Made by a program: the position numbers and the translations under genes
Shown: positions 7,956 to 64,000 of the stretch, piece by piece
How the letters are laid out: the number at the start of each line of letters is the position of its first letter
Position numbering within the stretch: position 1 is the stretch's first letter
Assembly: GCF_000143415.4 (NCBI RefSeq)
Contig: NW_003314267.1
Span: 3,679,138-3,743,137 of the forward strand
Direction of reading: 5' to 3'
Length of the DNA stretch: 64,000 bases
DNA from: Selaginella moellendorffii
Taxonomy: Eukaryota; Plantae; Lycopodiophyta
Notes under the pieces: generated by a model
What the model was told of the DNA's origin: nothing
What the model saw: the letters and a program-made list of their open reading frames with translations, nothing else
Databases searched by the model: none

Positions 7956-10900
7956 ATGAAGGCGGCGATTCCATCGGCGAGGCTGCGCGAGCGGGATTCG
8001 TCAAATGTATGTGTCGATTTGAATTTCTCGTGTTCCCTGATCGTGGCGCTGTGCTGCAGAAGGAGAATGAGCCGGATGTGCCGGCTGGGAAGAAGCGTAA
8101 GCTCGGAATTTCAAGGGAGCCAGCAGCTAGAGCTCCGCGAGAAACCCTATCGGCGCTCAATGTACCCAGAGAGTCCATCGCTTCCATTCAGGCAAGCAGC
8201 GTTCCAGCAGTCCCATCGACTGTCAGCTCGGGCCAAGTGGAATGGGAAGGAGTGGCTCGTATGGCCAGTGACGAAGTGGAGGCTTTGCTTAATACGAAAA
8301 TGGCTGGGAAATCTAAGTTCGACCTCAAGGTACGATTTTTTCTTCTCTTTTTCTTCGCTTTGTCACACCTATTTTCTGCCGTGTGATCGTCAGGGAAGGA
8401 ACGAGAAAATGATGGAGTACATAAAAAATCTAAGGACGTGCATTCGCCAGTTTTTACAAGTAGAGAGTGTCTATGTAATGCAGCAGGAACAGGCCCAGAA
8501 TCAGATCAAGGAAGAGAAGCAACGGCACGAAGAATCAGGTAAGTCTCTTATGTTGTGTTCCAGAGCAAGCAAGTTGAGATGTTTTCTTTTTAACAGAGCA
8601 AAAGATGTCCGCTAAGTATGGTGAATTGGAGGCTAAACTCGTAGAGGCTCGGCAACAATATGATAGACTTGTAGGACAGTTTCAGAAGCTAGAAACTGAG
8701 AAGCAGGTTGGAATCAATTCACGCTGATTTCTGGTTAATATCATGTTCAATAACTCAGGAACTTTCACTGGCTCACGCAAAGGATGTGGAGGCGCTGGAA
8801 GTAGCTTCAGAAGAACGCACGAAGTTGAATGAAGAGATTGACAAACTTCAAAAAGAAGTCGCCCAGTGTAATCATCAGGTTAGAGATATTTCTTACTCCT
8901 TGGTTGTTGCTAAATAGCAATCTCTGTTCTTTCAGCTGGGAACAGCGCAGGACGTGAACAGGCGATTGCAGGAGTATAACACGAGTTTGCAGCTTTATAA
9001 CAGTAAACTACAAAGTGACGCGGCTTTGGCTACCGAAGAAAACGCTAAGACGCAGAAAGAGAAGGCAGCTATTGTGGAAACCTTGGGCGCCTTGCGTGGA
9101 AATTATGCTGGTTTACAAACTCAACTCGAAACAGCAAAGGTAGGTCCCTTAAGATTGTTAAAGATTTTGCGTTCAACGTGCTTGTTGCAGGATGCTTTGC
9201 AAGCTGAAACGGCCAAGATGAAGTCAATAAATGACGAACTTTCTCTTTTGCGGGCGGAGCTCCTTCGTGTTTCAGAAGAAAGGGACAACTATTACCATCA
9301 GGTTCAGGCATTGTCAGCTGAAAATGCAGCAATCAGGGAAAAAACTTCAACATCTGCCGCTGAGATTATGCGCTTCACGAGCAAGGCAGAAGCGTTGGAG
9401 GTATTTAAGACGTTCTTTTACGTACTTCATAGTAACCCTTTGTTCAGGAAAGCTACGACAAGCAAGCGGAGCAGATCAGACTCCTTCAAAAACAACTCAA
9501 CCGGTCGAAGGAGATGCTAGAGGTAAAATGTATGCTGCTTCTATCTACTTAAGCTGATGGATCAGGTTGCGGAAAAATCATTGTCTTTCGAGAGGATTGG
9601 GAGCAGTGAATATATGTCAAAAATTGAAGCCCTTGAGAACAAACTTGCTGACGCAGAGCAGCAGCTCCGTGAGGGAGAGATGTTGCGGCGCAAGCTTCAT
9701 AACACCATCCAGGTTCGCACTTTTCTGTTTTTATCACCTAAGGCAAACAGTGATGTTACAGGAGCTGAAGGGGAACATTCGTGTATTCTGTAGAGTAAGA
9801 CCACTTTTACCCGATGAAAACGACGAATCATCGACTCTGATCAGCTATCCAGGCGAGGAGGGAATTGAGCTACACCAGGCTCAAGGTAAATTTATCTGTA
9901 TACATGCAGCTGCTTATCTGTTTCTTTAGGCCAAACATACTCGTTTTCTTTTGACAAAACTTTTGGACCCGACGTTTCTCAGAGAGACGTGTTTACTGAG
10001 ATTTCACAGCTCGTTCAAAGCGCCTTGGATGGCTATAAGGTAACACCTTTTCTTTTGTTGGCATTCTCTGTTTACCTTGTCCTTGTAGGTTTGCATATTT
10101 GCGTATGGCCAAACTGGATCGGGCAAGACACACACTATGATTGGACAGCCAGATGACATGGACCAGAAGGGTGTGATTCCCAGGTCTTTAGAGCAGATCT
10201 TTCAGTGCAGCCAAGCACTTCGTTCGCAAGGATGGAGCTTCAAAATGCAGGTCAGCACAAAGTTTGTTTCTTTTCGTAGTGGGGCGATTTATTCGTTCTT
10301 TTTCCAGGCTTCACTTCTTGAGATTTATAATGAAACTATAAGAGATCTTCTTGCGCCGTCAAAAAGCGTGGGTGGGGACACGACCCCAGCAAAGCAGCAC
10401 GCAATAAAGCACGAGCCAACTGGGAATACCGTTGTGACCGAGCTTACTGTCGTGGAAGTTAACAGCTGGGAAGAAGTGTCATCCCTTTTGAGGCAAGCTG
10501 CACAAAGCAGGTAAAAGAAATTTGGTTTGGCAATCTCTCGGTAGCAGACTGACCGAGCTGTATCATTGGCAGGACTGTAGGGAAAACAGCTATGAACGAC
10601 AGGTCCTCTCGAAGCCATTGTGTATTCACGCTGCGGATCATAGGATCGAATGAGGTAGTCATTGTTTTCACTGATACGAAGAATGATTTCTTTCTTTGTG
10701 TGTGTGTGTAGAATACTGAGCAACAGGTACAAGGAGTTCTCAACCTGATCGACTTGGCTGGAAGCGAGCGCCTCTCGAAAAGCGGCTCCACCGGCGAACG
10801 CCTGAAGGAAACACAGGTACTAATCCAAGTTTGCGAGTATTACTCTAACAAGAGCGAATCACTGTCGCGCAGGCCATAAACAAGAGCTTGTCTAGCCTCG

Positions 10901-11197
10901 GAGACGTGATCCTTGCGATTGCAAACAAAGACCCTCACATCCCATATAGAAACTCAAAGCTGACTTATCTTCTCCAGGTAAACTCTTACATACATTTGTG
11001 CAAGTGCTTACTGTGTGATCAAAACGCAGCCTTGCCTTGGTGGCGACTCGAAGACGCTGATGTTCGTGAATATCTCCCCCGACTCCAAATCACTCCATGA
11101 GTCGCTGTGCTCGCTGCGGTTTGCAGCCAAGGTGAATGCATGCGAGATTGGAGTTCCCAGGAGGTACACGAGCAGCAGGCCTCAAATTAGCTGTTGA
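7956..11197 (+). CDS. Kinesin-14A (C-terminal motor; ATK1/ATK5/Ncd-like), multi-exon
   Basis: N-terminal tail with KKRK, long coiled coil, neck [24 protein letters not shown]-loop [46 protein letters not shown]. Confidence 0.95.
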
Positions 11198-11804
11198 AGC
11201 TTTTGGTATTTTGTTGTCAAAGTTTTGCATTGACAAGAAGAAAAATTTATGTGGAACCAAACAAGAATATATATGGAAACCTTTGCCACCTTTTACTTGG
11301 ATTTTTTCAGATGGAGTACAAGCCGGCATGAAAGACTGATTGTAGAACTAACTAACGAAGATCAAGCTGTCAAGTTATTCGCTGTTAAGTTGGAACGGGA
11401 ATATGCTTGGTGGATGAGGAGTCTCTTCCCCAATATGTTACAACATATTGTCCATGAAGATGGAGAGACGCTTCCCAAGCTCACCAGAAAGGTTATGGAA
11501 ATTTATCCTTTGCAAATTCAAGCCAAGAAGCAGCTTGACTTCTCCTGCACGTTTTGCAAAAGATGATGATGAAGAAGACAATACAATTATATTTGAAAGC
11601 GAAGAAGTCTGAGTGTTTTTCTATATTCGATATATAATAAAAACCGATTTTGACTCATATCAGTTGTGTTAGTTGCGAGAACAACACAAGCTGATGTAGT
11701 ATGATTAAGTACCATCATACTACAGCAGATTGACTTGTAGCAACTAATACCGTTGCTCGCTTGCCCAGCATCAAGGCTCAGGCAGAGACTAGGGGGCAGC
11801 CCCT

Positions 11805-11920
11805 TTACCGAGATCCTCCCAGCAGGTCAACCAGGCATGCCAAATGGTATCCCCCAGCCTCCATCCCAAAGTCCTGGACCACTGCTCTTCCCAGCATCCC
11901 GGCATGGCTGCACGCCTTCT
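11805..11920 (-). pseudogene. PLS-PPR gene fragment in the left foldback arm (mirror copy at about 13010-13115, +)
   Basis: ACSHAGML...VQDFGMEAGGYHLACLVDLLG matches the L2/S2 PPR consensus ACSHAGL...M..DYG..P...HY.C.VDLLG. Confidence 0.75.
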
Positions 11921-13170
11921 TCTTATAAAACATCATTGGGATGTTGATCAATCCCTTCTTCTTTGTTTTCTTGGATGGAGCACTGATGAGTTGAGGCAGC
12001 AACATGGAGGTGGTGATCGTCATAGATCTGCTCCAAGGGAAGTGCAGGAATATCCATTGAATATCTAGTGTACACCTAAACTAGGTTCCGAATAGGCACT
12101 GTTGATCAATAGCACATCCAAACCATCTAGATATACCTGTTGTGTAGGAAGGCACATGCAAGCAAGGAGGCAATGGTGTGTGTGGCAGCCGTGTGGTGGC
12201 AGGCAATGAGGCAATGAGTTCTCTAGTGCCAGGCAAGGCAATAGTTTCAAGGCTAGGCAAAATGACCAAATAAGTGATTGCTGGTAACAATTCAAATGTG
12301 CTCACTTAACTTGATAATAGTCTTTCTTTGTCCCAAGCATACAGCGATAGTGCCTTTGCTTACAAGTTAGGCGTTTTGGGGTGGGAGAGGTTGTATCAAG
12401 AATTTCAGTACGTAGAAAAAATCTACACCTTCACCCTAGCTGCTAGTCCACTCTCTTCTAGGTAGCATAGATTTTCTTCAGGTACTAAAATTCTCGAGCC
12501 TCTCCTGCCCCAAGACACCCACTTTGTAGACAAAAACACCATTGCTATATGCTTGGGACAAAGAAGAACCATCATCAAGTCGAATGTGGATTGTTGCCGA
12601 CAATCGCCTACTCAATCTTTTTGCCCAACCCTAGAACCATTGCCTTGTTGTTCTTCTTGCCTAATGCCAAAGGGCTTATCGCCTCCTTACCTACTGCTAC
12701 ACGCCACCATCACCTCCTTGCCTTCACACGCCTTGCTCGATGAACCTCTCCCACCTCTCTTCATCATACCCTATCTAGCCCTAGTTCTTCAGCCGAAGAA
12801 GCAAGAGCCTTGGTATATCTAGACGGCTGGGATGTGCTGTTGATCAACGGTGCTGATTCGATTGGTTTAGGTGTACACTGGATATTTGACAGATATTTCT
12901 GCACTCCCCTTGGAGCACATCTGTGACGATTGCCACCTCCATGCTGCTGCCTCGACCTTCTTTCTCATCAGTGCTCCATCCAAGAAAACAAAGAAGAAGG
13001 GATTGATCGACGCCATGCTCGGATGCTGGGAAGAGCAGTGGTCCAGGATTTTGGGATGGAGGCTGGGGGATACCATTTGGCGTGCCTGGTTGACCTGCTG
13101 GGAGGATCTCGGTAAAGGGGCTGCCCCCCTCGTCTCTGCGTGAGCCTTGATGCTGGGCACACGAGCAACG

Positions 13171-56914: not shown

Positions 56915-59159
56915 CTAGCGTATTTCACAAGGGACATGAAAGCTCCGTCCATGACATATCTCTTCGAGATTTTCGCCTGCATACGAGATCAAAGGACTGA
57001 CCTCCACTCCTGCAGGATATTCAAGTTCAAGAGACAAACTAAATACCAGTTAATCCATCCATACCAGTTAAATGTAATGGCACCGAGTGTAGAATGAAAC
57101 CTCCCGCTGCTACCACCCAGCGCATGTGGAGGCGAAGAAGTAACAATCGAGCCGATTCTGGCGAGTCCACTCCACTCGCATTCTTCACCGGAGCAAACTC
57201 TTCCTCTCTTACAACCTGCTAAAACAAGAATTTGAAAACTAGCTAGCAACCAATCCAGCATACCTCGAAAATCGCCACCGATGGAGCATATGGAAACGCA
57301 TCGAATATATACTGCTCTAATTTGATGCCTTGGACAGGCCCGTCCGCGGAAGGTATTGTCTTCTCAGCAACATGATATCTGCAACGTCAGGAGTGAGATC
57401 CAATCATAAAAGAAGAAACTTGAGTTCCAGGAGCTACTTACATGCTGTCTTGCTCCAATTCATCCGTCACTGCAGCCAAAAACTCTAAGGAGTACATTTG
57501 CATACAAATCTGAAAAAATAGAAGAGTTGGAAGCATGCGAAAGAAAAAAGCACGTCTTACATTGCTCCATTTAAAGTTCAATCGTCCTGTCTCTTGGTTG
57601 ACCGAGGAAGCGAGAGCAGGATCCAGCTCACTGTATTCCAAGACGGCCACAGGTCCGTTCTTTGCACGTCTCACGAAGACTCCAACTCTTTCTTGAGGAT
57701 ACAACTATGAAAACACGCATAGGTGACTTTGGAAGAAAGGGGGAAATTTAAAAAATCAAATATATACCTTCTTCACAGCTTTGGCAGCACAGCTGACGTT
57801 TCTATCGATGCAGTAGCCTAGAAAGAGTGGGTCTGCTACCCGAACCTGTAAAGAAAGTCTATGAATCTAACGAAGTTTACTGATTTTTTTTAAACGAAAT
57901 CGTACCAGAGCATTGTCTACACTGAAACAATCCACGTAATGAATGCCTCTCTTGGCCATATCTTCCAAATGGCCCGAGGTCTTCAAAGCTGTAAAAGTAT
58001 ACCCATTAACTTCAGTCGGAGTAAGATAGAAGTCATAACGCGTACCTGCGTAGACTCCACCATTTCCGTCTGGGGCCCTTGAAATCTGCAATGCCAGCTA
58101 TGTGATGAAACACTTAGGCTTTCAACAGCTTATCAACACCTTACAGGCAGATTCCATGATAATTTTCCCTTCCTTCGTCACGCAAGGAAGCGTCCCTTGT
58201 TGAAAGAAGATTACCTGAAATGATACACGGTAAGCATCTTCCCTTTAGCACAGGAAAGTCGGATCAAACCTGTTGTGCTTCAAGACCAAAGTACTTTTTG
58301 GCTTCAAAGAATTGCCGAGTAGCGGTGTCTGTAAATGGACTCGTCATAATGTACCATGGGATCATGACTAGCCTTCCTGTGTATTTGATTTGGTTAGCCC
58401 AGAAGAACAGTTCTCAAGAACTCTTGCATACCTGAGCCAGCCCGATTCGAGGCTAGTTTTTGTATTCTCAAAATTCTCTCTGCCTGGAGCTGAAACAGTG
58501 ACTTTCCCGAAGGCAAACCGATATCTGTTCGAAGTGGAAATGGAAACTCGTAAGAAAAAGCCAGGGAATCGAGCGATAACTTACTAATGCATCCCTTTGG
58601 ATCATTACTACCCAAGCGTGTGCCCTGCAAGAAAATGGCCAAGGTTTCCAGGCAACAAGACAAGGAATTTGAGGATACCTGGCCCCCTGACAATAGCAGC
58701 ACCGCCAGTTTTCCTTCGGAGATCGCCTTCAAGCCCAATCCCCACCATCTTTCCCTTTCCTGGGCAGTCCTTTCTTCAATACAAGACACCGACGCTTCTG
58801 CTAGCGGCACTGGATTTCTCAGAGAATCTCCTGACAAAACAAAGCGTTTAAGCTTGGACCAAAAGCGAGACCGCGAAGAAAAAATTCCTCCTAGATATCT
58901 CACCGCGCTGTAGTGTCTTCCTCGCAATCCGCGAGACGCGAGGAAGATCTACCGCCTGCAAGCAGAGATTTCTCCAGATCAAGCCACAAATTGCCACATT
59001 TCCCACCTCCAATTCGCAGATCAGCTCGTCGCGCTCCACCTCGTTCAGCTCCTTCCAGCGCCCCAGCGTGTGCTCCTGCCCGAAATCCTTGAGCCGCTCC
59101 AGGAACGCCTGTGGCGGGAGCATCGATTCGCCGCCAGCTTCGAGCAACGCCTCTCCCAT
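56915..59159 (-). CDS. UAP1: UDP-N-acetylglucosamine pyrophosphorylase
   Basis: LLSGGQGTRLG..DPKG, IGLPSGKSLFQLQAERI, WYIMTSPFT, APDGNGGVY, VDNALV, LEQYIFDAFPYA, EVSPLISYAGENL. Confidence 0.95.
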
Positions 59160-59458
59160 GGCGCCGTGATCTCTAAAACCCTACCGGTCCTCCAAGGCAC
59201 ACCTTATATATGCGAAGAAAAAAAAACTACTGGCCCGAGAGAAAGCATATTCAATGGATGCTCTCTTACGACAGTGTTAATGAACGGATCTCACTTTGCT
59301 CCACGTACTCCGGATATAGAAAAATTCCAAAAACTCTTTGTTCTAACCATGAGCTTCTTCCGTATTGACAAATCATCGAGTTCTTCACGGAATCATCGAG
59401 TTCTTCCCAGTTCTTCACGGAAAAATCAATGCGAGGAGCTCAGCGTCTTCACTTGCGA

Positions 59459-61370
59459 TTAATCTGGAAGAAGCCAGTCAAAAAATCCCACCTTGGTATA
59501 CTTCCTTCCTTTTCCATACTCGATCAAAACGCTCCAGAGTTCCAGCACGCTCCACTTTTGTTCTAAAATCCAGTCGGCTATTCTCTGGAGCTTCGTGGTA
59601 CGTGGATCTTTGAATGTGTAGTACAACAGGAAGGGGCGGCCAGCCTGCAAAGGTTTCTCATCGTCCCAAAGCATGAATTTTTGCGACATAGAGATGCTTA
59701 CCTCCGAGGCAGCCAGCCACTGGAGCATGCTCTTAACTTCATGGTCCCCGCCAAAGACCCCACATCCCCAGTTGCCGGTGGCTACTCCACGAGCGCTTTC
59801 ACTCGAGCCACCGCATTGAATCGACTGATGGACGAGAAAGCCACAGTATGCCTTGTTAAGTTCCCTGGTACAGTAAAAAGTTCAAGGAAAAAAAAAAGAA
59901 AAGTCACAACGAAAAAGTATCGAAAACGAGAGCCTACCGCAGCATTAGCGCAGCGTCGAATTGTGCTTCTCCCGGAAACGGGAGAGCGTCAATGGCCACA
60001 ATGTGCGTTTCCTTTCGACCCCATGCATCTCTGGCTTTGTTGTCGAAGAACTTTCCAGCAAAACGAAAGCTCGAGGCATATCTATCGGGAAAATGAAATG
60101 GAAAAGAAGTTGGAACGCTTTCGTGGTAAGATAAACTTGGCGTACCCCTCATATCGATTGTAGCACTGCGTCCCGACTATTTCTATTGCTTCATTGTCTT
60201 GCATTGCCGGTAAGAAAAGCCTTCCAGCGATCAGTTCGGGATTGATTACGCATCTAATCTCCTCCTGTCACAATTGTTCACATAACTTTTAAACGTAGAG
60301 AAGTCTACCTGCAAGCATCCGGCGCCGAGTACACCACCACCTAAGACCCTGTTGGCGAAATCCACCTCCAAAACGGGAGTATCACTACCTTCTATAGTGC
60401 CATCTTCCATTACCTGAAAAGAAGAGAACAAGTTAAGGAACTGACAACGCTTGTGACTAAGACCAGTATTTGACACAGCGGTCTCGAGGAACTGCTCCAG
60501 AAAGAGAGAGGATCCTCCATCTCTTGTTCCAAAGACAACACCTTGCGCTCGTAAGAAATCATTCCTTGCGGTACGCTTTCACAAACAATCTGAAAGTAAT
60601 GCAACAAGCATATGATCTTGTGCTTGGCACTCTCTTCTCGATTCTCATCAACCAGTGCCCTGCAAAAAGCAACAGATAAACAGAAAGGAAAAAAAAACAA
60701 AGCCCGGTGTAACTTACATGAAGAGTTTATAGAAGTTTAAGTCGGGAAGATCCAATTTGTTCCTCTCTGCCGAAGGATACAAGCAGAAAAACCCGCACGC
60801 TAGAATCGATGCCACAAGCTCCTGGTGGTGATCTGCTGGCATAAGAGAATGAAGAACTCAAAGAAGAAAATGGATGAAATCTTTTACCTGGCTCAGCAAA
60901 ACCATGCCACTTTGTCCGGCGGGAAGAGCACGCAGCTGCAAAAAATCCAGTTGTGATGGAAAGCGATCGCTCACGCTGCCATCAATGTGATCCTTGACAA
61001 GCGCCGACAGCCTCAAGGCGAGCTGAGCCATCGCTGGCAGCAACGAGCCAAAGAATCCGCGACAGAAATCTTCTGGTACGAGCTGGAAGCCAGATTTTTT
61101 TGCACAACTGGATCAAGAATTTCGGCTTACCTCGCGGAAGAACAAGCCCATTCCTTGCACAGCCCTAGCCGGAAGCTTGGCATCTCTCATCCCGCCCCGG
61201 TGACGCATCTCCACGATGTAATCCAGCAGGGCCTCTCCGGACGAGACGCGGCTGATCGCCGGGCCCTGCGCAAGCTCCGAGAGCGCCATAGAAACGCCGA
61301 TCGGCCATTCCAGGACCTTGGACGCTTCATCCAGTGTGAGAGGCAACAAAGGCGCCATACCCATAGCCAT
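59459..61370 (-). CDS. PARG: Poly(ADP-ribose) glycohydrolase
   Basis: VDFANRVLGGGVLGAGCLQ|EEIR (GGG-X-QEE signature), INPELIAGRLFLP, IVAIDAL, VATGNWGCGVFGGD, LQWLAAS. Confidence 0.96.
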
Positions 61371-61444
61371 TAGGGCAACACACGTTCAACATTTGTTAAT
61401 ATAGAATATTCCCTAGCAATTTAAATTACCTTAGGGCTTGGGCG

Positions 61445-63573
61445 ATGGAGGCAGTGATAGTCGAGCCGCCGCAGGATGCGACTGTACATGCCGTGTGCTT
61501 GCCGGAACTGGGGAGAGTGCAGGAGCGAGTTGTGTTAATTTTCCATGTAGCTTATCCGAGCGTAATAGATATTCACCTCTATTCTGTGCATCTCCAACTT
61601 CTCAAGTTACGCCGATCTCGGCTCATGGATCACATTCGAGCATCTCTGGAGCTGTCAACGTTCGGTACTCCACGAGCTCTGGAGCTCGCATTCACAAAGT
61701 AAGAGTATGTGCATTGTACTTTTTCCAAAACATCGGTGGTTCGTTTGCAGGATGAATGAAGAGCTGCGGGCTGTGGTAGGAACATCAGATTGCTGGGTAT
61801 GTGGTGGTGATTACTGCTGTTGCTGTAAATGTTTGCTTTGGTTCTGGTTATAGGATTGGTGTGCGCAAAACAGGTCCTTGGTGGTGGTGCTTGGAGACGC
61901 GCATGTGTATGTGTTTGGCGAGGCCTTTGCGTCGGTGATGCTGTGCCGAAATGGGAAGGACGAGATGCTGACCCGTCCAAGTTCTCTCTACCGTCTCAAA
62001 AATGCTAGCCCCCCGCAAAGTAGCAGTGAACCTTTTTATTACCACAAGGTACTCACTCTTTTGTTGAAATTTGTTATTCTGGAAGCTTGGTGGACGCAGG
62101 AGCGGGTGACTACAGCAGACACCTATCTTCTCGTTGCATCGGCGCACCTGGGTTGTCACATGGATGGCGATTATACTAGCGTTTTCACCACTCGGATTGA
62201 CGCAATGGTGAGTATTTTATACTTTTGATCCTCAAACGAGCTTGTAATGTGCGAACTAGTACAGGGCCTCGAGGAAGCTTGCCGCCAGATTGCTGCAGGG
62301 ACCGATGAATGCAGGACGTTCGCACTAGTTCCTGTTGGAGAGCTGCTGCGACAGAAAGTGGCCAATGGAGAGGAAGACCCAATCGATTTGAATCCCGAGC
62401 CTGTGGACGAATCTGAATCTGAATCTGAATCTGAATCTGAAGATGAAGATGAGTTCGAAGACGAAACAGCGATGATAGAGTTATATGATGTTACACCCTG
62501 TGGTTTCCGCCCCCTAGGTACGTACAGGACATCAATTATAGCTATATGACCATATTACTGCTTTCAGTCAATGGGAACGCTCAAGTACCCGAACCCTTTA
62601 TCTGTTGCAATCCCGGACCTCCTAGGGACCCCTGCATAAAGGTGATGGACCTCAAGGTAATAATACTTCAAATTTCCCTCTTGTGGTTTTTTTTTCCAGA
62701 GTTCTTGGTTTGAGATTTAGTGGCTTTTGATCAGGAAAAGGACCTCAAGCTTGTTTGTAAAGTCGGCTCTTGCAAGTTTGTGATTAAAAGCGGGGACATA
62801 AAAGAGTGGTTTGTGGACGGAAGGAAGGACGCAATTGTAGTTCCTGTTGGAGGTCAGATACACAGAGGTAACGCAAAGGGGTATTTGGCATTTTGACATG
62901 AGCTTTTGTCTTTTCTTTTCTCTTCAGAAATAGGTTTTGCCACTGGGTCGAGCTTTACTGGCTTGGATATCATGTAAGTGTCTTTCCTTATTTCGTTTTC
63001 CACCTTTTAACTGACTCGTTTCTCAGCCCTTCAGGAGGACTGCCAGCACCTAAAATCATTATTACTAGAGGCCCAAAATACTTCAAAGACATGGAGACGG
63101 AAGCTGCCAAGCAACTTGGTCTCACTTATGAGTATGTCGGAGTGTGTAGCAAATTTGATACATTGTGCTTTTGCTACTACAGGAACGCTATAACATTTGC
63201 TCGCAAGAAAGGCGTGAAGCACATAGCGCTCCCAGCTATCTCGTGCGGATGTGGCGGGTTTGTTGCTCACACTTTACCTCTTGTATACTGAGTTCGCATT
63301 GTGTTTCAGGGTTCCTCTGGATAAAGCGGCACGGATTGCTGTGGAAAGCGTACAAAAGGCACTCAAAAGTGCTAAAGCGTCCATTGAGGTAAGCTGCCCT
63401 GGATTAGACATGCCTTTGTTATTCAGTGTTCGAAATTGTAGGTTCACTTTGTCATAAAGGACGAACCCGCCTGGAGAGTGTGGGTAGCTGCAACAGACCT
63501 CCTTGCATTTTGGAATTATGATCGCTACCTATCTTATCGGTGCAACAGACCTCCCTATCCAGTCCGTGAATGA
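61445..63573 (+). CDS. Fusion protein: degenerate PP2C-fold domain + acidic linker + degenerate MacroD-type macrodomain
   Basis: Phase-consistent GT-AG model with no stops. PP2C-like part: ALELAFTKMNEEL, LVVVLGDAHVYVFGEAFASVMLCRNGK, DTYLLVASAHL. Linker: (ES)5EDEDEFEDE. Macrodomain part: FVIKSGDIKEWFVDGRKDAIV, GGLPAPKIIITRGPKY, YENAITFARKKGVKHIALPAISCG, EVHFVI..W. Confidence 0.8.
62409..62438 (+). repeat. (GAATCT)5 coding microsatellite encoding an ES repeat
   Basis: Five exact hexamers in the acidic linker exon. Confidence 0.9.
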
Positions 63574-63649
63574 GAAGTAGAATAGTTACACCTGGTTTGT
63601 TTTGGCTTAAATTGGATTTAATAGATAAACTAGTCCAGTAAACTTTGCG

Positions 63650-64000
63650 CGTGATGATCTCCGGGCTGGGCTCCCGCGACGCGCAGCGCATCTTCTTGTC
63701 CGTGGATCTCAAGGGGCCGAGGCCGTGATGGCGGCGATGATCGAGTCATGCTGCGACGCCGCCGGGATCGCGAGCGCCCGCGCGACGGCAGCGCGAGAAG
63801 AGCTGGAGGCCAGGTTGAAGGAGAGGGACGAGGCCAACATCAGAAATTTTCGGTGATCTCTCGCGGTGCTTGCAACCACAGGAGAGTGATGGGGGGCTGA
63901 AGGTGGCGAGGGAGATCTCTCACCATTCCTACCTCAAGAAGAGGCAAGACAAGAAGCTGGAGGAGCTCAAGGACACACTCATCGACGAGGAGTTGCTGTT
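63650..64000 (+). pseudogene. Possible decayed PPR-like fragment
   Basis: GC-rich; MISGLGSRDAQRIF and AAMIESCC weakly resemble PPR helices; frames broken; runs to the window edge. Confidence 0.25.

Follow-up and report, generated by a model that had tools for sequence, protein, structure and literature searches.

In the lycophyte Selaginella moellendorffii, a gene for poly(ADP-ribose) glycohydrolase (PARG) lies head-to-head with a gene whose product ends in a macro domain, and the question raised by this locus is whether the two genes form a dedicated ADP-ribose module or have come to be neighbors in another way. The stretch that we analyzed, hereafter called the window, comprises 64,000 nucleotides of contig NW_003314267.1 (assembly GCF_000143415.4, positions 3,679,138 to 3,743,137 of the forward strand), and the pair occupies its positions 59459-63573, with PARG on the minus strand and its partner (the plus gene) on the plus strand. 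A preliminary description had proposed that the pair constitutes a co-regulated eraser of poly-ADP-ribose (PAR) plus an ADP-ribose reader or decoy. This proposal is poorly supported, as the plus gene belongs to a dispersed multi-copy family, of which only the copy in the window and its presumed allele adjoin PARG. We consider the pairing to be, with a probability of about 0.6, a by-product of the placement of this family in a compact genome, not a dedicated ADP-ribose module.

The window is eukaryotic DNA with introns of about 50-70 nt. Splicing by hand gave one open frame for each gene, namely, 483 amino acids (aa) from nine exons for PARG (coding sequence [CDS] 61370-59459, minus strand), and 504 aa from 12 exons for the plus gene (CDS 61445-63573, plus strand), laid out as a PP2C-like N-domain, an acidic linker and a macro domain:

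61370-61131, 61082-60888, 60821-60718, 60659-60464, 60413-60309, minus strand: PARG exons 1-5
60264-60146, 60081-59938, 59864-59702, 59644-59459, minus strand: PARG exons 6-9
61371-61444: spacer of 74 bases between the two start codons
61429-61444, plus strand: telomere-repeat-like (telo-box-like) element TAGGGCTTGGGCG, from an upstream line-up of nine copies
61445-61698, 61751-61796, 61854-62048, 62100-62207, 62265-62517, 62568-62656, plus strand: plus gene exons 1-6
62735-62867, 62928-62973, 63027-63131, 63183-63257, 63310-63388, 63442-63573, plus strand: plus gene exons 7-12
61445-62369, plus strand: PP2C/PPM-like N-domain (aa 1-236), a probable pseudo-phosphatase, from language model and hhalign
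62370-62611, plus strand: acidic linker (aa 237-300), from the translation
62735-63573, plus strand: macro-domain region (exons 7-12), with the block matching Pfam Macro at 62966-63340 (aa 373-445)

Both gene models agree with the preliminary description, as do the distance of 74 bp between the ATG of PARG (61370) and that of the plus gene (61445), which was read directly, and the peptides quoted from the spliced frame of the plus gene, all of which are present. The minus-strand gene is, judged by its motifs, the canonical PARG of S. moellendorffii, with predicted PAR glycohydrolase activity. Seven of its nine exons match PARG_cat_N (positions 6-118) and PARG_cat_C (positions 16-190) of Pfam colinearly, with single-exon scores of 27.9-69.5 bits, each above the gathering score, and the GGG-X7-QEE catalytic motif is intact (GGGVLGAGCLQEE) across the exon 5/6 junction, which is confirmed by RNA; GGG-X6-8-QEE is the defining motif of canonical PARGs (PMC7050489). 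In both domains and in this motif, the gene is like Arabidopsis PARG1 and human PARG, from which it differs notably only by an abundant frame-shifting acceptor of intron 2 (see last section).

Contigs from four sequencing runs of four studies were aligned to the locus. All eight PARG introns appear in spliced contigs as CT..AC joints, i.e. GT..AG on the minus strand, indicating that the four runs are RNA and that PARG is expressed in all of them; indeed, PARG was assembled complete in each. A transcript of the plus gene is present as well: its introns 1, 2, 4, 5, 9 and 10 are backed by RNA joints, and intron 8 by a loose end. However, this RNA was found in only two of the four runs (X1 and X3), as short fragmentary contigs, whereas X5 and X8 yielded no contig of the plus gene, though both contain the full PARG. 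In none of 20 runs with sampled words of the locus did the share of these words exceed 0.36, which is about what PARG contributes on its own. This evidence consists of contigs, from which transcript starts, expression levels and co-expression are not derivable.

Genomic contexts of the gene family

The family comprises at least 18 gene models on at least nine scaffolds of the two-haplotype assembly (fragments included). All 13 relatives in a set of 5.8 billion proteins are from S. moellendorffii, and neither this set nor one of 1.84 billion representative sequences yielded a homolog from any other species. We fetched ten family loci (L001-L010) and compared them with the window, with flanks seen to 8-10 kb. 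The genes upstream of the family copies at these loci are:

L001: PARG, in the gene order of the window (UDPGP - PARG - family gene), 97% identical to the window over 5.6 kb
L002, L006 (twice) and L007: a GDSL lipase
L003: an aldo-keto reductase
L004 and L009: a gene for a 356-aa unknown protein plus a RadA-like gene
L008 and L010: a FAM32A-like gene
L005: no upstream gene called; nearby duplicate of the L004 locus

L001 is presumably the other haplotype of the window locus. PARG is absent within 8-10 kb at the nine other family loci examined, and present only in the window and at L001. The preliminary description had taken missing adjacency in close relatives as an argument against a module; as far as this is applicable to a family found in no other species, the pairing is missing at the nine other loci. 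In contrast to this variety of neighbors, the orientation is constant, as the family gene is head-to-head with the resident gene in all six distinct contexts (binomial p ~0.016, a small sample).

What the non-allelic copies share is the gene body. Homology among them begins at 61430-61443, i.e. 2-15 nt before the ATG, and runs to 63564 near the stop codon, or to about 30 nt beyond the stop in other paralogs, with nearly the same limits in every copy. The repeated unit thus measures ~2.2 kb with its introns; it begins about 15 nt ahead of the ATG and ends about 30 bp after the stop codon. In global alignments, the exons are 86-90% and the introns 82-86% identical, while the 300-nt flanks on both sides are 33-41% identical, no more than expected at random. 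All the copies examined have the same exon-intron structure (11 of 11 introns), and retroposition was rejected as the spreading route for this reason. Since the copies carry almost no upstream DNA and lie at the 5' ends of other genes, the PARG pairing is one instance of a family-wide habit. We propose that the copies have almost no promoter of their own, and would rely on, or persist best next to, the 5' region of a neighboring gene, PARG being one of six unrelated hosts; the unit may have been spread or homogenized by the insertion of a cassette with fixed ends or by gene conversion.

The spacer between the start codons has an AT-rich center. Its length of 74 bp lies below the limit for a divergent pair (<1 kb between starts), and is short yet not exceptional in this genome: CDS-to-CDS gaps in the fetched loci are mostly 10-400 bp, and the head-to-head gaps at ten S. 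moellendorffii loci include 10, 217, 254, 281, 333, 333 and 376 bp, with two of >1 kb. The block of 461 nt that holds the spacer (61000-61460) is 96% identical to L001. The only upstream sequence common to the paralogs is a telomere-repeat-like element, TAGGGCTT(A)GGGC, which most copies have 10-30 nt ahead of the ATG. As to the shared promoter that had been proposed, overlapping 5' regulatory DNA is forced by a distance of 74 bp, but we found no support for dedicated co-regulation.

A few further differences among the loci were observed. The presumed haplotypes (window and L001) agree at 95.3% in exon 1 of the family gene and at 97.4-100% in its other exons, and ~45 nt that follow right after the stop codon in L001 are missing from the window. 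The pair of GDSL lipase and family gene is itself tandemly duplicated. The motif block in L005 (about 9960-9995) is the reverse complement of that in L004 and L009 (about 9950-9985 in L004), i.e. a small inversion.

Architecture and selective constraint of the plus gene product

Domain searches were conducted with single exons, with the database model P0001, in which the first 60 aa and the greater part of the linker are missing, and with the paralogs P0011-P0013. P0001 is 100% identical over the query, and the annotated relatives bear the SELMODRAFT name 'Macro domain-containing protein'. The annotated models P0001 and P0010 start at Met61, have an intron read-through in place of most of the acidic linker, and splice, within 63563-64000 of the window, across ~320 nt into the downstream DEAH-helicase-like gene. 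As an RNA contig from X3 runs through the stop at 63573, these models look chimeric. The following feature comes from the same contig:

63574-63606, plus strand: start of the 3' untranslated region (UTR) of the plus gene, where the X3 contig 63456-63606 crosses the stop at 63573 unspliced

The N-domain was not recognized by conventional searches. It has no match to PF00481, PF13672 or PF07228 at E<=1, its family profile has none among PDB sequences at E<=10, the comparison of this profile with a single PP2C sequence gave nothing, and a HMMER search of the 1.84 billion representatives gave nine matches, none of them a PP2C, the seven inspected being close paralogs. Two weaker, largely independent lines of evidence point to a PP2C origin. 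A language-model search with residues 1-232 retrieved PPM-type phosphatase clusters at 0.95-0.96 with 173-182 features in common, a level that shuffled proteins reach about once in 100. In addition, hhalign against a profile of 120 PP2Cs, from which the PP2C motif consensus was taken, gave a weak match (P 0.006) over 213 colinear columns, in which all the core PP2C motifs are paired; its score of 26.0 compares with 14.8±3.0 for column shuffles, and was equaled in one of 150 shuffles. In PP2C, the aspartates of ED, LASDG and DN bind the catalytic metals. According to hhalign, at low alignment confidence, the plus gene has T/V for ED, possibly D-x-H for DGH, VASAH (ASRH in paralogs) for (L)ASDG, and E-C for DN. 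Compared with PP2C/PPM phosphatases, the order of the core motifs is kept in this alignment, including ...MLCRNGK..., ...LLVAS.. and G(S/T).D/E..., whereas Pfam and PDB sequence searches miss the domain and the three metal-binding motifs have lost their aspartates. The AlphaFold2 model of the N-domain has a predicted local distance difference test (pLDDT) score of 37, too low for a meaningful fold search; the order of its predicted strands and helices fits the PPM core. We therefore regard it as highly probable that the N-domain is derived from PP2C and is catalytically dead; mammalian TAB1 is an example of such a PPM pseudo-phosphatase. The pseudo-PP2C/macro fusion of the preliminary description is largely right in this part, and most likely PP2C-derived. 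We found no description of a PP2C-macro fusion in the literature.

The C-terminus of the plus gene is, as judged by these comparisons, a macro domain, but one that is truncated at its N-terminal side. P0001 matches Pfam Macro (PF01661) with 55.8 bits and P0004 with 51.6 bits, the cut-off being 22; the match spans only positions 46-118 of the 118 of the model, i.e. the last 60%. When single exons were searched, exon 10 gave one weak Macro match (19.8 bits), and exon 7 had no Pfam match. Searches of PDB by sequence and by family profile matched YmdB, macroH2A1.1, PARP14, GDAP2 and MacroD1/2, and every alignment begins at TGSSFTGLDIIPSGGLPAPK, corresponding to about residue 63 of YmdB, past the N-terminal third of the fold; a language-model search of the macro region retrieved Macro clusters at 0.90. 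The C-terminal two thirds are accordingly homologous to the MacroD-type domains (E. coli YmdB, 5cms/1spv, and human MacroD1/2) and to macroH2A1.1, PARP14 and GDAP2, with which the matched part shares the ...PAIS.G..G.P... diphosphate-loop block and the final strand. In MacroD enzymes, a conserved Asn and a Gly-rich catalytic loop lie before helix alpha-1 (PMC7050489), within the N-terminal third that is not detectable in the plus gene. Neither Pfam nor the PDB alignments detected the Gly-rich catalytic-loop region in it: the sequence from DAIVVPV to the matched block (GGQIHREIGFATGS) has neither a GGG run nor an alignable Asn, and there are ~30 residues between the GDI motif and the matched block (DAIVVPVGGQIHREIGFATGS), compared with ~60 residues before this block in YmdB. 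The earlier label 'MacroD-like' therefore overstates the domain, which departs from the active MacroD enzymes in a defining feature. The AlphaFold2 model of the macro region, built on the shallow family alignment, has a pLDDT of 37, too low for a structural check. A search for further macro relatives (97-308 aa) yielded no more than two additional fragments from Selaginella, and a profile scan of genome contigs with the macro alignment found no relative. The macro domain has no similarity to the macro fold of the neighboring PARG, and an origin by copying from it was therefore rejected.

Selection differs along the protein. We estimated the ratio of nonsynonymous to synonymous substitution rates (dN/dS) by the Nei-Gojobori method with bootstrap in six pairs of family copies. 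The N-domain has a dN/dS of 0.24-0.48, with the 95% interval below 1 in all six pairs, the linker has a dN/dS of ~1 with an interval that includes 1, and the macro region has 0.60-0.89, again with intervals that include 1. In other words, the N-domain is constrained and the macro part is near-neutral, its dN/dS being indistinguishable from 1; therefore, the part that carries the ADP-ribose hypothesis is the least constrained one. Most likely, the plus gene product is a non-catalytic scaffold, of which the PP2C-like domain would be the constrained part. In the acidic linker, a GAATCT hexanucleotide microsatellite at about 62402-62458 encodes the (Glu-Ser)n run, and the linker of the window copy is ~16 codons shorter than those in the paralogs.

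Signs of decay were also seen in the family, namely, two in-frame stops in the L005 copy (10001-12047) and, in that of L007 (about 7820), a lost ATG.

Explanations of the pairing

The reading that we prefer, that PARG is one of several hosts of a family which habitually settles at the 5' ends of resident genes, faces several objections. The six of six head-to-head contexts are a small sample; gene conversion instead of insertion could have produced the sharp limits of homology; the family could have been founded by the copy next to PARG; and the macro domain could bind ADP-ribose in spite of its truncation. Moreover, with a spacing of 74 bp, some shared regulation of PARG and the plus gene is almost unavoidable. 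Finally, S. moellendorffii reportedly has about 22,000 genes, and the chance that one of ~8 family loci would land beside PARG, the single gene closest to macro-domain biology, is small, of the order of 0.1%, a figure taken before allowing for the many pairings that could be read as suggestive. This a priori improbability of a macro gene beside PARG is the one argument that keeps the module hypothesis alive.

The alternative that survives best, though we consider it unlikely, is a chance neighborhood of two genes with independent promoters, in which the plus gene would be driven from its own telo-box-like element and PARG from its own core promoter, the head-to-head habit being accidental. The shared TAGGGCTT(A)GGGC-like element, which precedes the ATG by 10-30 bp in most copies, would suit this explanation, as would the compactness of the genome, where head-to-head gaps go down to 10 bp, and the observation that transcription initiation in plants is mostly one-directional (PMC11335568). 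On the other hand, accident does not readily account for divergence in six of six contexts (p ~0.016), and 74 bp leave little room for two core promoters. Maps of transcription start sites in S. moellendorffii by csRNA-seq and 5'GRO-seq exist (PMC11335568).

Somewhat less probable is that the window copy, or even the whole family, is a transcribed but functionless relic, the frames of which are open through youth or gene conversion. A dN/dS indistinguishable from 1 in macro region and linker, the in-frame stops in L005, the missing ATG in L007, the many fragmentary models among the annotated family members and the low level of plus gene RNA are in agreement with it. However, the N-domain is constrained, with intervals below 1 in six pairs, the aligned frame is open over its full length in six of the seven copies that were compared, the exon-intron structure is retained throughout the copies examined, and correctly spliced RNA of the plus gene was seen.

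We consider the co-regulated ADP-ribose module itself to be improbable, slightly more so than decay. According to this hypothesis, PARG trims PAR and leaves protein-linked ADP-ribose for the macro domain to read, shield or mimic, both genes being expressed from one bidirectional promoter. The head-to-head spacing of 74 bp is kept in the presumed second haplotype, both genes are transcribed, a macro domain is indeed present in the plus gene, and the adjacency of two ADP-ribose-related genes is unlikely a priori. Nevertheless, PARG is found in only one of the six family contexts; the family was not found outside S. moellendorffii, hence there is no conserved synteny; the macro domain evolves near-neutrally and has no detectable catalytic and diphosphate-loop region; the plus gene was unassembled in two of the four RNA runs with complete PARG; and short distances between divergent genes are usual in this genome.

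Two human gene pairs offer a comparison. Human PARG and TIM23 reportedly lie head-to-head as well, with a short promoter in common (Meyer et al. 2003, Gene 314:181, listed in PMC7050489); the partner in that pair is a mitochondrial translocase unrelated to ADP-ribose, which indicates that a promoter shared with PARG need not entail functional coupling. BAL1 (PARP9) and BBAP are said to have a bidirectional promoter, with co-regulation established by experiment (Juszczynski et al. 2006, listed in PMC7050489). As in S. moellendorffii, a macro-domain gene (BAL1) is a member of this divergent pair, and BAL1's partner is functionally linked to it; for the human pair, co-regulation is reported from experiment, whereas for the S. 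moellendorffii pair both co-regulation and a competent macro domain are hypothetical. Our literature search for a plant PARG/macrodomain pair, including Selaginella, found nothing relevant.

Least credible of all is the compound scenario in which a promoter-less gene-body unit parks at resident 5' ends, encodes a double pseudo-enzyme (a dead PPM plus a crippled macro domain), and has been co-opted, in its PARG-adjacent copy, as a PAR/ADP-ribose adaptor or decoy expressed with PARG.

A functional pairing would make this the first case in plants of a PAR eraser that is genetically hard-wired to a macro-domain partner, but the evidence points the opposite way. On our preferred reading, the interest of the locus lies elsewhere. 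The combination of a PPM-derived pseudo-enzyme with a truncated macro domain would be a lycophyte-specific architecture, for which databases list only 'hypothetical' or 'Macro domain-containing' proteins. Furthermore, a family that shares the gene body only, and always faces the start of another gene, offers a system for the study of promoter acquisition in a compact genome. It also calls for caution, in that function should not be read from adjacency in the S. moellendorffii genome.

Minor features of the locus

Downstream of the paralog in L003 (10760-17267) lie a genuine PP2C gene (313 aa), a gene for a 751-aa unknown protein and a DEAH helicase gene. Since L003 13375-14884 is 78% identical to the sequence downstream of the plus gene in the window (63651-64000 region), L003 and the window are partly paralogous segments; the PP2C neighbor in L003 may be a coincidence.

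On the minus strand, PARG is followed by a gene of the UDPGP family (UDP-sugar pyrophosphorylase-like), the start of which was assembled in all four RNA runs; there are ~90 bp between the end of the PARG 3' UTR and the ATG of this gene. The remaining features are:

58848-59159, minus strand: start of the UDPGP-family gene, with its ATG at 59159
59247-59458, minus strand: PARG 3' UTR, from unspliced contigs 59247/59263/59269 to 59628/59643 in X5, X1 and X8
60822-60887, minus strand: PARG intron 2 with two acceptors, from joints 60820>60887 and 60832>60888

The 66-nt form of PARG intron 2 keeps the frame, and only with this form is the Pfam match unbroken across positions 47/48. The 55-nt form, with an acceptor 11 nt upstream, adds 11 nt to the transcript, and the resulting frameshift leads to an early stop. 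Both forms are abundant, as each was found in three of the four RNA runs, and both together in two runs; the alternative acceptor may serve regulated unproductive splicing of PARG.

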